A stretch of 64,000 nt of DNA from Glycera tridactyla (lineage: Eukaryota): NCBI GenBank assembly GCA_965644265.1, contig OZ286468.1, forward strand, positions 8,370,001 to 8,434,000, given 5' to 3'. A model generated the notes under the pieces. The model saw nothing but the letters and a program-made list of their open reading frames with translations, ran no database searches and had not been told where the DNA came from. How positions within the stretch are numbered: the first letter of the stretch is position 1; every line of letters starts with the position of its first letter. The position numbers and the translations under genes are program-made. This document shows, piece by piece, positions 4,124-55,112 of the stretch.

Positions 4124-4214
4124 CATCACTCTCAACACGTTGACGTTGGCGGTTGAGAGTCCACATGTCTACACGCAGGCGGGTGTAGCCCTCTCGGTGA
4201 CTGGTATCGCACAG
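4124..4214 (+). CDS. FLOT1: FLOT1 exon 4 variant a (91 nt): [30 protein letters not shown]
   Basis: Acceptor ttccgttttacAG, donor cag|GTagac; 1 nt plus 30 stop-free codons; homologous to FLOT1 residues 41-70. Confidence 0.94.
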
Positions 4215-4757
4215 GTAGACACAAATCCTCCCTCGCTCCCTGAGCCCCTCTCTCAACTCACGCCGCTGCAGGCAGATGACGTGTCCATGTTCGGTCAATG
4301 TTGAAACATTGAATTGTTGTATTTCAATGTTGAAGCAGCTGTCTATCGCAGTTAGGTAGTCCTTTCAGTGTTCACTAGATGTCAGGACACCATTTGCCTG
4401 CAGGATTGTTGTTTGCGAAGCTGCGGTCAAAGCTCAGCATTCTGTCCAACAGAAGTTGTCAGAAACCATGCCATACCACGATGAGTGACTCCGTATTCGA
4501 AAAAATTGTTTTAATTTGATAAAACGAACAAAATTCCACCCTTGTTTAATTATCAGGAGCATCTTGCACTCTGTCATTCAATAAACTTGAAAATTTGCAT
4601 AGTTGCGATTTTGACAAATTAATAGAAATACTGTGGTATTGGTCATACCTGGCTACGGTTGGTGACAGGTGCTGTGGCTTTTGAGCCGTGAGTGGAGTGC
4701 TCGGCCCACCTCATTCTGAGTTTACCGCGCTGCGCCTGGCGTCCATACCTGCCAATC

Positions 4758-4799
4758 ATCATCATCGTCATCGTCCTCCTCCTCCTCCTCCTCCTCCTC
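4758..4799. repeat. (ATC)n-(CCT)n microsatellite
   Basis: Direct inspection. Confidence 0.9.
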
Positions 4800-7290
4800 G
4801 CCATACCCACTGCCGCTGCCCACTTGCTCCTGTCCTTGCTCATAGGCCATTGTGTGAACCTTCTCTCTCATCTCCGTAGAACTCTCATCTGGTTGTGACT
4901 CCTGGGGAAAGTCGGTTATCAGAATCCGCGATTTCTTCTCTTTCCAGACCCGCATTCAGTTACCTGTGATCGGCATCCCTTTCTGAAAGATTCCCAGACT
5001 TTTTTTACTGAAAGTTCCTTGTTGCCAAGTGGCCAGTGTATTGATGATCACAGAGATTTGGTCTCATATAACAGAATTGATCTGTATTTTGAGGTGGGAT
5101 TGCCAGATTTGACTACAGTAAACTTCTCCACCTTTTTACCTCCTTTCTTGGAAGGAGAATTTTGCGTTTCTGTAACCGACTTTTCCTGATATCTCATTCC
5201 ATTCATTACCACTTACACCTTCTGCTGCGTCAAGTTGTCTAAGCACTTGCGGTGCACTGACGCATAGTCTGTATTGGTGATCCATGAACCACGGTGCTCA
5301 CCGAGTGTGCATCCATCTCAAAATTCACATAGAATTAAAATCACCATTGAAATAGGTATGGGCTATGAATTTGGGAGAAATTTCGATGTTAAATATCATA
5401 AGCGGTTGTTCAAAGTATGCTGTATTGGAATGATGACAGACGAAGACAATGGCCTTCCAATGTGGCCCTGTCCGCCATAGCCCTACATGTTGGGCCATAC
5501 CATAATATTATGCACCATTTTCTCTTCGTCACAACCATGAAACCAGTCATTATGGAAATGAACTGCTTTGCATTATTTCGCATTCCCGTACATTCCATAG
5601 TCTGCTGGTGCCTAAACTGACCCAGGTGGTATCAGCGTACAACCCGTTTAGTTGTCGCATCGAGACATGTGCCCTTCATGGAATCACCGGCCAGTTAGCA
5701 CACTCTATCGCAGTCTTTTTTCCTTCAAGCTCAGTTCTCACTGGTTGTCATTCGATGACACACAAACACCACATTTTCAGATTGTGTTATCCAGAAGGTG
5801 AACCAGCATTTCATAATTCTTGCACTCAATTCTGTAGCACGGTTGAGAGAATGGTTTTATGAGGCGCCCAGTACTCCATCTGGTGATTCTCGGGAGAGAC
5901 ACAGACTGCGAAATATGTGGGAGCTGTGATAGGACATCCTTCACTTCTCACATCTACACCAACATCATTTAATTTTGAATTTGAATTTGAATTCAAATTT
6001 AATCTGTGTTATGTGGTAGTCGAAGAATGCAGTGGGTAAACTGGTTAACCGCTCTTACTCTTGAGTAAAATCCATGATTGGAGCCAACGCTCCCATATTA
6101 CACGCATTCTTCAGGTTCTAACATTATTCACTTTCCATACACTTCCTCCTTTCCCCCAACACCATCCCGTGCAGTCACGGGGAAAAACGCTGTAGCATTC
6201 CTGTGAACTTGATACTTGTACTTACATAGATCATTTCAAAATATCTAGTCAGGAAGTCATCCTGGACTGTGAATATAAAGATAGGCCTAGCAGCGATTAA
6301 AATACATGTTAGGCCGTGGTTTCATGGGCTGATTTTTTGCACCGATCATCGAGAAATTGCAGCCATCTGCTGGGTATGTGCCACTGAAAAGATGATCAAG
6401 ATGTGATTCAGGGAATGAATTTGGCTGGAGTTATAGTGCCATGCTCATTCTAAATGCATCCTGGGCTCAAATATCATGAGCAAAATCAGTATCTGCTCTG
6501 GAATTCAACATATTCCAGATTGACCATCAGTATCAGTTCACAGCAGTATTCTTGGCTGATATGGCACTTCCGAAGTTAGGAGATTTTGACGCTGTCTAAT
6601 GTTTTGCAAACACTCGTAAATGAGAAAGGACATCTTATACAGTGGTTGACCTTCTATTTCTGTTCATGATGCCCCCTTTCATCTTCCACCCATCCAGTGA
6701 CACGCGCATACATTAGCACACGGACACTTACATGCACAAACTAACTTGAAAACGATACTTGAGTTAGGGAAAATGCGCCTATTCCAATCCTCGTACCAGT
6801 AGATAGGATCACCTCTCAGGTTCTTTGCTAATAGTTATGAACGAGTAGGGACACTCCATGGACACTATCATATTGTGCATTAAAGTATCGTCTCATAGTA
6901 TCTGAAATTCTCGCCAGGTTGATAAATTGACCATCCTCGCTGGACTCATTGCTTCCATAGGCTGAGAAAGACAGTGTCACTATTACGATAATAATCTTAC
7001 TTATATTTTCATCATTTGAAAGTTTTGCGCTGATTGGAATCATCTCACGTGGCTTAATTTTTTTCAGATTGCTGCAGAGTTGTGGTTGCCTTTGAAATTA
7101 ATCAAGCCCTTATTTTGCTATTTGTACGCCACTAGCTGCCGTTAGCTGGATTGTGCTTGTCAGTCAAGTCTAGAATAAGTCGTTGTAGTTGTGTGAGGTT
7201 TGGAAACACGCGGTTGATGAGAGACAACCCGGCAGAACGTGCCTCGTTTTGGCGAGACACACTCAGCTGCAATCTCATTCCGTTTTTCAG

Positions 7291-7381
7291 CATCACTCTC
7301 AACACAATGACGCTGGCTGTTGAGACCACACACGTCTACACACAGATGGGCGTAGCACTGTCGGTCACGGGTATTGCGCAG
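7291..7381 (+). CDS. FLOT1: FLOT1 exon 4 variant b (91 nt): [30 protein letters not shown]
   Basis: Acceptor ttccgtttttcAG, donor cag|GTagac; 26/30 aa identical to 4a, with 12 synonymous and 4 non-synonymous codon differences. Confidence 0.94.
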
Positions 7382-53750: not shown

Positions 53751-53874
53751 CAGAGATGCCCAACTGCTATGATTTTGGAGTAGCAACTACTCTTTTTAGG
53801 CGAAAATTCCTGAATTTTACGAATGCTCTACTCTTTTTGCTACTATTTTTGTCCATCAGAGGTTGGCATCTATG
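53751..53874. mobile_element. Short MITE of a CAGAGATGCC(A)AC-TIR family
   Basis: cagagatgccc ... gttggcatctatg; internal sequence shared with ~52230-52400; the same termini occur at ~45191 and ~46510. Confidence 0.55.
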
Positions 53875-54128
53875 GGTAAGGGTATTTACACTCTGTGCGA
53901 ACTTGCCTAATGGGTGGGGTGCAAGCTTAGTGTCAAGCCTTAGGTAGTCGTCACATGAGGCTCCCACATCAAGTATGCCATTGGAACTCAAAAGAAGCTG
54001 ATCAAGTTATCGAAGGTGACGCCTTCTTTCATTCTTTTGCACTTGTCACCTTTTTTTTCTTTTTCATCGGATTTTTGCCACTGACTTTCACCCATGCTGG
54101 TGCGTGTGTTATGTGCTACCTATTTCAG

Positions 54129-54224
54129 GGTTACCTCAGAGCTCTAGGCATGACCCGGACGGCGCAGGTCAAACGAGACGCCCGAATAGGCGAGGCCGAG
54201 GCGCAGCGCGATGCCGCGCTTAAG
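54129..54224 (+). CDS. FLOT1: FLOT1 exon 7 variant a (96 nt): [32 protein letters not shown]
   Basis: Acceptor cctatttcAG, donor aag|GTgatg; 32 codons; homologous to FLOT1 residues 159-190. Confidence 0.95.
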
Positions 54225-55016
54225 GTGATGTAGATGACCCCGTTCTCTGGGGTGGGGCGGCCTGCCCGCCCGCCCGCCTGCTGCTCACCACCCCTCTCCT
54301 CTCCGCTAGCTCGCCGCCCTCCAACTCACATCATACAGGAATGGCTCGCTCAGAGGGCATAGTTGCTGTATCAGCATGCCCTCGACCCAGACTGCATTCA
54401 ATGGTCTCCCAGAGTGCTTGCAAATGAAAAGAAAAAGGGTATGAATTCATCATATCAGTTTTTGTCTTCCAAACCATGATAATCTTGGGACAATATGGTC
54501 CTTGGACTTCCCTGTGATTGTGCAGAGAAAAAGAACAAAATTCAATACAAAATTCAATGCCATCTGTCCAATAAGTTGTATTATGGTGTCACTAGTATCA
54601 ATCTTACAATATCATTCAGCTGATTACTGAGTTACATGATCAATATCATTTATTATTCCAATGCAATTTGATTGATGAGAATTTTTCATTTCAGTCAGCA
54701 AATAATGGCAATGTGTTCAAATTGGAGCTGACATGGTCTTTGGTTTTAGTCTTATTGGAATAGATTTTTCGGCTAAAGTAGCCCGACCAACCATATATAC
54801 ACTTGAACAGAGGATATCAGCAAATTTGTCGCACCCTCCTAGACCATTGAATAAGGTCCTATTTTGCTTGTTTCACGCCTTTTCACATTATATATATATA
54901 CATGTAACCATGGGTCTTTTAACTTTTTTTTCAATTGATGCTGGTTTCTAATGGTGCCGCATTTTAGTCTCTATTTCTTACACATATCACTTGTATTACT
55001 TGTCACTAAAACCTAG

Positions 55017-55112
55017 GGTTATCTCAAATCGCTTGGAATGGGCCGAACAGCACAAGTCAAGCGTGACGCTCGGATTGGTGAGGCTGAAGCGCGACGCGAT
55101 GCCACCATCAAG
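55017..55112 (+). CDS. FLOT1: FLOT1 exon 7 variant b (96 nt): [32 protein letters not shown]
   Basis: Acceptor ctaaaacctAG, donor aag|GTcagg; 26/32 aa identical to 7a, with 15 synonymous and 6 non-synonymous codon differences. Confidence 0.94.

Follow-up and report, generated by a model that had tools for sequence, protein, structure and literature searches.

Does the flotillin-1 gene of Glycera tridactyla carry several sets of tandemly duplicated exons, and are the copies used as mutually exclusive alternatives? The question arises from a 64,000-nt stretch of contig OZ286468.1 (8,370,001-8,434,000; hereafter the window, whose own positions are used for all coordinates below), in which an initial examination of the bare sequence (the sequence-only reading) had described a "Dscam-like" combinatorial system. 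In the interpretation that we favor, with a probability of roughly 0.8, the gene has four versions of exon 4, two of exon 5 and two of exon 7, and a mature mRNA most likely includes a single copy from each cluster, yielding up to 16 proteins of equal length.

Exon layout and identity of the locus

Exons were placed by six-frame self-comparison of the window combined with motif anchoring. This procedure recovered the nine plus-strand exons of the flotillin-1 orthologue in the order already proposed (4a, 4b, 4c, 4d, 5a, 5b, 6, 7a, 7b). All nine are preceded by AG, followed by GT and free of stop codons; their lengths are 91 nt (exon 4), 144 nt (exon 5), 120 nt (exon 6) and 96 nt (exon 7), and within each cluster the duplicates match in length, phase and splice-site type (91 nt, n = 4; 144 nt, n = 2; 96 nt, n = 2):

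4124-4214, plus strand: exon 4a, 91 nt, FLOT1 residues ~41-70, AG/GT borders, open frame
7291-7381, plus strand: exon 4b, 91 nt, AG/GT borders, open frame
15217-15307, plus strand: exon 4c, 91 nt, AG/GT borders, open frame
21391-21481, plus strand: exon 4d, 91 nt, the most canonical exon-4 copy
35494-35637, plus strand: exon 5a, 144 nt, FLOT1 residues 71-118, '[12 protein letters not shown]' type
36767-36910, plus strand: exon 5b, 144 nt, canonical type
43489-44071, no strand: assembly gap, a run of N within the 5b-6 intron that touches no reading frame
47364-47483, plus strand: exon 6, 120 nt, one copy
54129-54224, plus strand: exon 7a, 96 nt, FLOT1 residues 159-190, hinge and start of the CC1 helix
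55017-55112, plus strand: exon 7b, 96 nt, canonical type

A codon is interrupted just before each 91-nt exon-4 copy, whose first base is the third of that codon. Exon 4d has the strongest donor of the four (GTAAGC) and is identical to transcripts of relatives at 29 of its 30 residues, and exon 4c shares 26 of 30 residues with the lone exon 4 of Ridgeia. The single exon 6 agrees with many relatives at 39 of 40 residues, and residue 2 of exon 7b aligns with FLOT1 Tyr160. Searching the window with four flotillins (tblastn) produced no further copies and neither exons 1-3 nor exons 8 and beyond; the gene thus extends past both window ends. A putative relic of another exon 6, at 47643-47714 (tblastn E ~7), was rejected as a chance match, its nucleotide similarity being no higher than that of shuffled sequences, and a scan of positions 1-35344 and 35390-64000 returned no Rfam family. 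The copy counts rest on the sequenced letters: the unread stretch 43489-44071, immediately preceded by a (CATC)n microsatellite (43361-43485), could hide another exon copy.

On sequence similarity, the gene is identified as a FLOT1 orthologue of the SPFH/Band 7 superfamily, closer to flotillin-1 than to flotillin-2. Exon 5b matches human FLOT1 residues 71-118 with an E value of 8e-17 (3e-10 for FLOT2), exon 7b matches FLOT1 with 1e-7 (2.5e-4 for FLOT2), and for the nearest full-length relatives the bit score is 589 against FLOT1 and 379 against FLOT2. Over 150 residues, the closest proteins come from marine transcripts (137), Owenia (136) and Lingula (132). For the Pfam domain Band_7 (PF01145), exon 6 alone gave a signal, at E 0.038 and 14.5 bits and so below the cut-off of 23.6, single exons being too short; relatives that are 91% identical across exons 4-7 carry both PF01145 and PF15975. 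Human FLOT1 (PDB 9bq2, 9l3g) aligns one to one with the window exons.

Age of the copies and their counterparts in relatives

The substitution counts of the sequence-only reading were reproduced exactly: 12 synonymous versus 4 non-synonymous changes between 4a and 4b, 15 versus 6 between 7a and 7b, and 6 versus 0 in the final 17 codons of 5a and 5b. Its proposal of purifying selection held as well, with a synonymous excess that is significant in every copy pair (binomial p 3e-4 to 2e-8) and dN/dS values of 0.03-0.12 at pS 0.54-0.91 and saturated dS (Nei-Gojobori). The lowest value belongs to 7a versus 7b (0.03); 4a and 4b, 80% identical at the nucleotide level, give 0.08, the overall range of nucleotide identity between copies being 69-80%. 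In a blastn comparison of the window with itself, similarity between copies was confined to the exons, as had been stated, with the sole exception of the flanks of 4a and 4b, where it extends ~23 nt upstream and ~9 nt downstream. The pair 4a/4b is thus the youngest duplication, the two copies having ~23 nt of upstream intron in common. The same comparison revealed no repeated 4-5-6-7 unit within the window. Saturated dS and homology that ends at the exon borders effectively exclude both tandem gene duplication and an assembly or haplotype artefact, in agreement with the initial argument. Judged from these comparisons, the copies are old tandem exon duplicates of flotillin-1 maintained by purifying selection.

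Annelid-type flotillin-1 genes of relatives lend weight to this history. The exon-5 pair, its order and its AG/GT borders preserved, is present at a locus of Ridgeia piscesae (L001) and in two further assemblies (L003 and L004). Exon 5a forms a clade with the first exon-5 copies of these three loci and with three transcripts (support 95/92), 5b is sister to the transcript P0291, and 5a compared with these orthologues gives pN/pS of 0.11-0.26, the range for first copies across the species being 0.11-0.27. The pair is at least older than the divergence of the compared species. Direct evidence of exchange in mRNA comes from two contigs of one species, one from a JGI metatranscriptome (L006) and one from a Logan run (L007), each encoding 428 aa: 47 mismatches fall within the 144 nt of exon 5 and only 7 in the other 1143 nt, without a change in length, which is a clean swap of the 144-nt exon 5. 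All these relatives share with the window orthologous 5a-type and 5b-type exons of 144 nt. The content of the clusters varies among relatives. Exon 4 is single in Ridgeia and L003, a further locus (L005) has single copies throughout, and the exon-7 pair recurs in L004 alone among the compared loci with an exon-5 pair. The window holds the richest combination seen, and the differing cluster content indicates that copies have been gained and lost.

Beyond these close counterparts, flotillin-1 isoforms that have the same length and differ only in exon blocks are listed for many spiralians. They include six exon-4 versions in Lineus (RefSeq, L. longissimus X1-X6), five exon-4 and two exon-7 versions in Haliotis (RefSeq, H. 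rufescens X1-X8), two exon-3 and three exon-4 versions in Lingula (RefSeq, L. anatina X1-X6) and three exon-3 versions in Owenia (GenBank, O. fusiformis). Comparable sets were found in Mytilus and the chiton Liolophura (both RefSeq), in Sinanodonta and Bradybaena (both GenBank), and in Littorina, Biomphalaria and Babylonia; Tigriopus also has exon-4 versions, one of them taken from a Logan contig. The Haliotis RefSeq models list combinations of exon-4 and exon-7 versions; RefSeq combinations of this kind could in part be products of the modelling, built on incomplete evidence. Isoform proteins from transcripts and RefSeq contain exactly one copy per block.

Among the other public models, one from Batillaria (P0169) fuses both exon-7 copies in one protein and one from Plakobranchus (P0181) contains two exon-4 copies. 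These two are best read as an annotation warning, as public models can merge alternative copies into a single protein.

Splicing of the copies and rival explanations

For Glycera itself, the sequencing runs found cover ~8% of sampled words both of an 8.5-kb and of a 1.4-kb stretch; because this fraction is the same irrespective of exon density, the runs read as low-pass DNA rather than RNA. Neither protein collections nor JGI contigs contained a protein or transcript identical to the window exons, a protein search with exon 5a gave no 100% match, and patterns for the exon 5/6 junction and for exon 6 had no match in metagenome contigs. The mutually exclusive use put forward in the sequence-only reading is borne out in relatives, for exons 4, 5 and 7 at the level of RNA or gene models, and from these relatives and the structure of the locus we infer the same use as probable in this animal, where the clusters may be chosen independently.

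The reading frame accords with such use. All 16 paths that take one copy per cluster are open. Joining any two exon-4 copies, or skipping exon 4, leads to a stop, so that for this cluster exclusivity is built into the frame: with two copies or none, translation would stop early and the mRNA would be lost via nonsense-mediated decay. With exons 5 and 7 the frame survives both the joining of two copies and the omission of the exon, and for these two clusters active splicing control is therefore required. A search for the means of such control, covering introns, splice sites, motifs and inverted repeats, gave no mechanism that would prevent the joining of 5a to 5b or of 7a to 7b. The intervening introns measure 1129 nt (5a-5b) and 792 nt (7a-7b). 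Distant branch points or steric exclusion were considered and rejected, the AG-exclusion zones spanning only 21-111 nt and the introns at least 792 nt. All splice sites are GT-AG, with no U12-type sites among them, and no intron motif is common to the window, Ridgeia, L003 and L004. The inverted repeats around the exon-5 and exon-7 clusters are short, with 70-93% complementarity, and do not exceed what chance would give; an element at 54729-54750 pairs weakly with 53638-53653 and with the 7b acceptor, but not significantly. Acceptors are weak at 5b and 7b, given which some copies could be seldom used, and several copies have weak polypyrimidine tracts and donors.

These last features bear on the one competing account that we take seriously while considering it unlikely, namely that the duplicates are real but are not strictly used one of each. 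Some copies (e.g., 4a-4c, 5a and 7a) would then be rare, tissue-restricted or in the course of being lost, 5a and 5b or 7a and 7b would sometimes be included together or skipped, and the isoforms would be well below 16 or structured in another way. The weak tracts and donors, the in-frame outcome of doubling or skipping exons 5 and 7, the empty search for an exclusion mechanism and the variable cluster content among relatives (Ridgeia, L003, L005) all fit this account. It sits poorly, however, with dN/dS of at most 0.12 in all pairs at saturated dS, which is unexpected had one partner drifted, and with the conservation of the 5a type as an orthologous clade whose exon is the one used in three assembled transcripts. 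The length-neutral swap in the relative from which both mRNAs are available (L006/L007) and the presence of one copy per block in all transcript-derived and RefSeq proteins likewise favor strict choice.

It is highly improbable that the copies belong to separate transcripts or genes, for instance through promoters inside the gene or another gene that overlaps it. The long introns between copies (3-14 kb) and a frame through 4b that continues upstream without a stop and contains an in-frame ATG could be read in that way, but the exon-4 copies start in mid-codon and require an upstream exon, there are no other duplicated flotillin exons and no second 4-5-6-7 series, and all other exons are common to the isoforms of relatives. 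Least credible of all is an assembly artefact, whether from haplotypes that were collapsed or expanded or from a wrong join across the gap. The gap does fall inside the exon series; yet it is intronic, the exons that flank it follow each other in number, share one strand and are compatible in phase, and 5b is directly followed by exon 6 at the loci of two relatives. Haplotypes would moreover be near-identical, introns included, whereas the copies are 69-80% identical with introns that cannot be aligned, and the same exon-5 pair and an exon-7 pair occur in independent assemblies of other species. We accordingly retain the reading of one copy per cluster in each mRNA.

A wider generalization is, in our estimate, somewhat more likely to fail than to hold: that flotillin-1 of spiralians is a recurrent hot spot of exclusive exon arrays (exons 3, 4, 5 and 7, depending on the lineage) that together span nearly all of the SPFH domain, from which copies are chosen independently in this animal to give at least 16 isoforms, a possible fourth cluster, of exon 3, lying upstream of the window. 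If this is true, the isoforms would alter the membrane face, the charged interface with neighbours and the Tyr160 hinge, and cells could build flotillin cages that differ in assembly or endocytic properties.

Predicted effects on the flotillin dome and comparison with known systems

The alternatives appear to preserve core residues and to vary recurrent positions on one face of each structural element, as suggested by sequence periodicity laid on a predicted model. The variable hot-spot positions recur across taxa and map, in this model, to the strand 47-57, to two helices (79-89 and 94-115) and to the beginning of the helix 161-277. The choice of exon 4 would alter a beta-hairpin in the part of the SPFH region close to the membrane; that of exon 5, SPFH helices one and two, shifting the net charge by 2; and that of exon 7, the hinge together with the opening turns of the wall helix, directly past the conserved Tyr160 equivalent. 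Cryo-EM has revealed a single flotillin dome of 22+22 subunits, in which membrane contact, alternating order and disassembly rely on SPFH1 loops, charged patches at the SPFH2 interfaces and the hinge role of Tyr160 (PMC11260169, PMC13000311). Exactly these three modules have repeatedly been made exchangeable, with alternatives under strong long-term purifying selection. The likely function would be to tune membrane or neighbour contacts, and how the flotillin-1/-2 dome is assembled or taken apart, by cell or stage. To our knowledge, flotillins are regarded as invariant scaffolds. The locus offers naturally occurring variants that can be used to learn which surfaces govern cage assembly, curvature or partner choice, and a clean multi-cluster case outside arthropods for studying the exclusivity of in-frame exon pairs.

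The literature searched contained no publication on flotillin-1 exon clusters, in line with the initial impression that no such system had been described. Public gene models nevertheless already list flotillin-1 isoforms (Lineus, Haliotis, Lingula, Mytilus, chiton, Owenia), so that an unqualified claim of novelty would be overstated. These spiralian sets resemble the window in the gene concerned, the exon borders, the constant protein length and the varying hot-spot positions. They differ in that the alternatives retrieved fall only in blocks of exons 3, 4 or 7, with no exon-5 alternative, and in that none combines three clusters, as the 4 x 2 x 2 arrangement of the window does. Substitutions between tandemly duplicated exons in human genes are also ancient, with both copies under strong purifying selection and a homologous segment replaced; in the searched text of these studies, 'flotillin' does not occur alongside terms for exon duplication or mutually exclusive exons (PMC9741552, PMC8373072, PMC5740500).

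Of the classical systems, Dscam1 has 12, 48 and 33 variants in its clusters versus 4, 2 and 2 here, and the RNA complementarity between docking site and selector that characterizes it was not detected around the exon-5 and exon-7 clusters of the window; the label "Dscam-like" was in this respect too strong. As in insect Dscam1, Mhc, 14-3-3zeta and MRP, the tandem exon duplicates are equal in length and phase and grouped by exon, a gene has several clusters, and the alternatives replace a structural module while the length of the protein stays constant. In the classical cases, the protein so diversified is a recognition receptor or a motor, whereas flotillin-1 is a cytoplasmic scaffold.

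Exon anatomy and identity of the gene

In a six-frame self-comparison, similar open frames of the plus strand fell into three groups, and subsequent anchoring on conserved motifs delineated nine exons, numbered after the human gene (exon 4, residues 41-70; exon 5, 71-118; exon 6, 119-158; exon 7, 159-190). Each is preceded by AG, followed by GT and free of stops, and the exons, order, splice-site dinucleotides and open frames proposed in the sequence-only reading are borne out by both procedures; this exon observation is right and robust.

Flotillin-1 exons and the assembly gap in the window (G+C 40%)
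4124-4214, plus strand, exon 4a, 91 nt
7291-7381, plus strand, exon 4b, 91 nt
15217-15307, plus strand, exon 4c, 91 nt
21391-21481, plus strand, exon 4d, 91 nt
35494-35637, plus strand, exon 5a, 144 nt
36767-36910, plus strand, exon 5b, 144 nt
43361-43485, (CATC)n microsatellite, about 31 copies, ending three bases before the gap
43489-44071, assembly gap (the single N run), in the 5b-6 intron, right after the (CATC)n array
47364-47483, plus strand, exon 6, 120 nt, one copy
54129-54224, plus strand, exon 7a, 96 nt
55017-55112, plus strand, exon 7b, 96 nt

By sequence similarity, the gene is assigned as a FLOT1 orthologue: the whole of exon 5b matches residues 71-118 of human flotillin-1 (E 8e-17 vs 3e-10 for flotillin-2), exon 7b aligns with FLOT1 160-189, its second residue on Tyr160 (E 1e-7 vs 2.5e-4 for flotillin-2), and the bit scores of full-length relatives are 589 against FLOT1 and 379 against FLOT2. 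Individual exons fall short of the length that Pfam needs; the sole match was that of exon 6 to Band_7, below threshold. The closest proteins over exons 4-7 (150 residues) are marine transcripts (137), followed by Owenia (136), Lingula (132) and molluscs (at most 128); with the exon-5 pair shared with Ridgeia, this points to a spiralian, probably an annelid. A tblastn search of the window with four flotillins as queries detected no further flotillin-1 copies, exons 1-3 or exons 8 onwards; both edges of the window therefore fall within introns of the gene. A candidate second exon 6 at 47643 was a weak match at chance level.

The (CATC)n array is the likely reason for the assembly break, which, lying within an intron, affects no reading frame. 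The gap may hide an extra exon; the exons flanking it are successive members of the series, on one strand and with matching phases, and two relatives' loci have exon 6 directly after 5b. A repeat of about 184 nt is dispersed through the flotillin introns (9639-9822, 40450-40633, 44978-45127; the first two copies 92% identical) and is probably a short mobile element. Tandem-repeat arrays occupy 12821-13282 and 63439-63873, the latter with a long open frame of a repeated peptide unit and probably a minisatellite, not a gene.

Origin of the copies and constraints on their splicing

Duplicate-looking exons could also stem from haplotype mis-assembly or from tandem gene duplication, both of which had been argued against from the sequence. 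The copies are 69-80% identical in the exons whereas the introns cannot be aligned, so that they are neither haplotypes nor assembly duplicates, and because the 4-5-6-7 unit is never repeated, exons rather than genes were duplicated. The accompanying claim that introns are non-homologous beyond the splice sites holds generally in self-blastn, except that the similarity of 4a and 4b continues into the flanks, for about 23 nt on the upstream side and 9 nt on the downstream side. Identity suggests that exon 4 duplicated in the order 4d, then 4c, then 4a/4b. We exactly reproduced the earlier synonymous and non-synonymous counts (4a/4b, 12 and 4; 7a/7b, 15 and 6; last 17 codons of 5a/5b, 6 and 0), and the purifying selection read from them is supported by Nei-Gojobori dN/dS of 0.03-0.12 in all eight copy pairs and a significant synonymous excess (p 3e-4 to 2e-8 across pairs); pS between copies is saturated (0.54-0.91).

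The three clusters are very likely sets of mutually exclusive exons; a Dscam-like combinatorial use yielding 16 isoforms is hypothetical. No stop interrupts any of the 16 paths that take one copy per cluster across the window's 151 codons, whereas joining any two exon-4 copies, or skipping exon 4, leads to a stop, at codon 35-63 in the former case. Exon 4 would be self-policing, presumably via nonsense-mediated decay. Exons 5 and 7 can each be doubled or omitted without a frame shift, and active control is therefore needed for these two. The introns between copies measure 792-7835 nt, all splice sites are GT-AG, and the AG-exclusion zones are short. No intron motif common to the window and three other genomes was found, inverted repeats in the exon-5 and exon-7 clusters did not exceed the chance level, and no Rfam family matched in the window. 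An element between 7a and 7b (54729-54750) is weakly complementary to a site upstream of 7a (53638-53653) and to the 7b acceptor (55005-55026), with nine perfect pairs; this layout would suit competing structures, yet the pairing does not exceed chance and lacks conservation.

Alternative exons in relatives

Searching related genomes, as the sequence-only reading had proposed, recovered an exon-5 pair, ordered as in the window and with AG/GT ends, in the annelid Ridgeia piscesae (L001) and two further assemblies (L003 and L004, the latter also carrying an exon-7 pair); in another assembly, L005, exon 5 is single-copy. In a tree, 5a clusters with these first copies and three transcripts (support 95/92) and 5b is sister to transcript P0291; 5a-type orthologues show pN/pS of 0.11-0.27 between species. 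Two independent mRNA assemblies of one relative, a JGI metatranscriptome contig (L006) and a Logan run contig (L007), each encode a 428-aa protein and have UTRs that align; mismatches between them number 47 of 144 nt within exon 5 vs 7 of 1143 nt elsewhere, a clean 5a/5b swap within one species. Same-length isoform sets differing only inside the exon 3, 4 or 7 blocks extend the pattern.

Isoform sets of relatives
Lineus longissimus (X1-X6): exon 4, six versions
Haliotis rufescens: exon 4, five versions; exon 7, two versions
Lingula anatina: exon 3, two versions (P0171/P0175); exon 4, three versions
Mytilus, Sinanodonta and Liolophura (chiton): exon 4, three versions each
Tigriopus (copepod): exon 4 alternatives
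Littorina, Biomphalaria, Bradybaena and Babylonia: exon 7 alternatives
Owenia fusiformis (P0248/P0422/P0423): exon 3, three versions

Because Owenia and Lingula isoforms differ solely in the exon-3 block, an exon-3 cluster may lie just upstream of the window. Two ab initio models, Batillaria P0169 with both exon 7 copies in one protein and Plakobranchus P0181 with two exon 4 copies joined through intron sequence, are misannotations that arose from the exon duplicates. For the species itself, matching sequencing runs contain 7-9% of the words from an 8.5-kb stretch (2.6% exonic) and 8% of those from a 1.4-kb stretch, a pattern that fits low-coverage DNA; a 5.8-billion-protein collection held no protein identical to the window's exons, and exon junction and exon patterns matched no JGI contigs.

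Possible protein-level consequences and relation to known systems

Positions differing between alternatives recur across taxa. In an AlphaFold prediction for the closest relative (pLDDT 74), those of exon 4 (FLOT1 41-42, 45-46, 49, 51, 53-54, 58-59, 62) occupy alternate residues in strand 47-57 and its loop, those of exon 5 (82-83, 89, 92-94, 98, 101; last 17 residues invariant) share one side of helices 79-89 and 94-115, and those of exon 7 (162-163, 166-167, 171, 184; Tyr160 invariant) line a single face of the long wall helix 161-277 over its first turns. Net charge differs by two between 5a and 5b and by one between 7a and 7b. Cryo-EM papers give these regions distinct roles: SPFH1 loops mediate membrane insertion and neighbour contact, charge-complementary SPFH2 patches enforce FLOT1/FLOT2 alternation, and Tyr160 serves as a hinge, with its phosphorylation as the proposed trigger of bending or disassembly (PMC11260169, PMC13000311). 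Exchange of SPFH1, SPFH2 and hinge modules could plausibly tune assembly and membrane behaviour.

Full-text literature searches turned up no paper that connects flotillin with duplicated or mutually exclusive exons, the sole co-occurrence being human FLOT2 isoform switching, in line with the earlier statement that no described three-cluster system in FLOT1 was known, although the isoforms of relatives are already in RefSeq. The system is apparently unpublished in flotillin-1, and its kind is well known.
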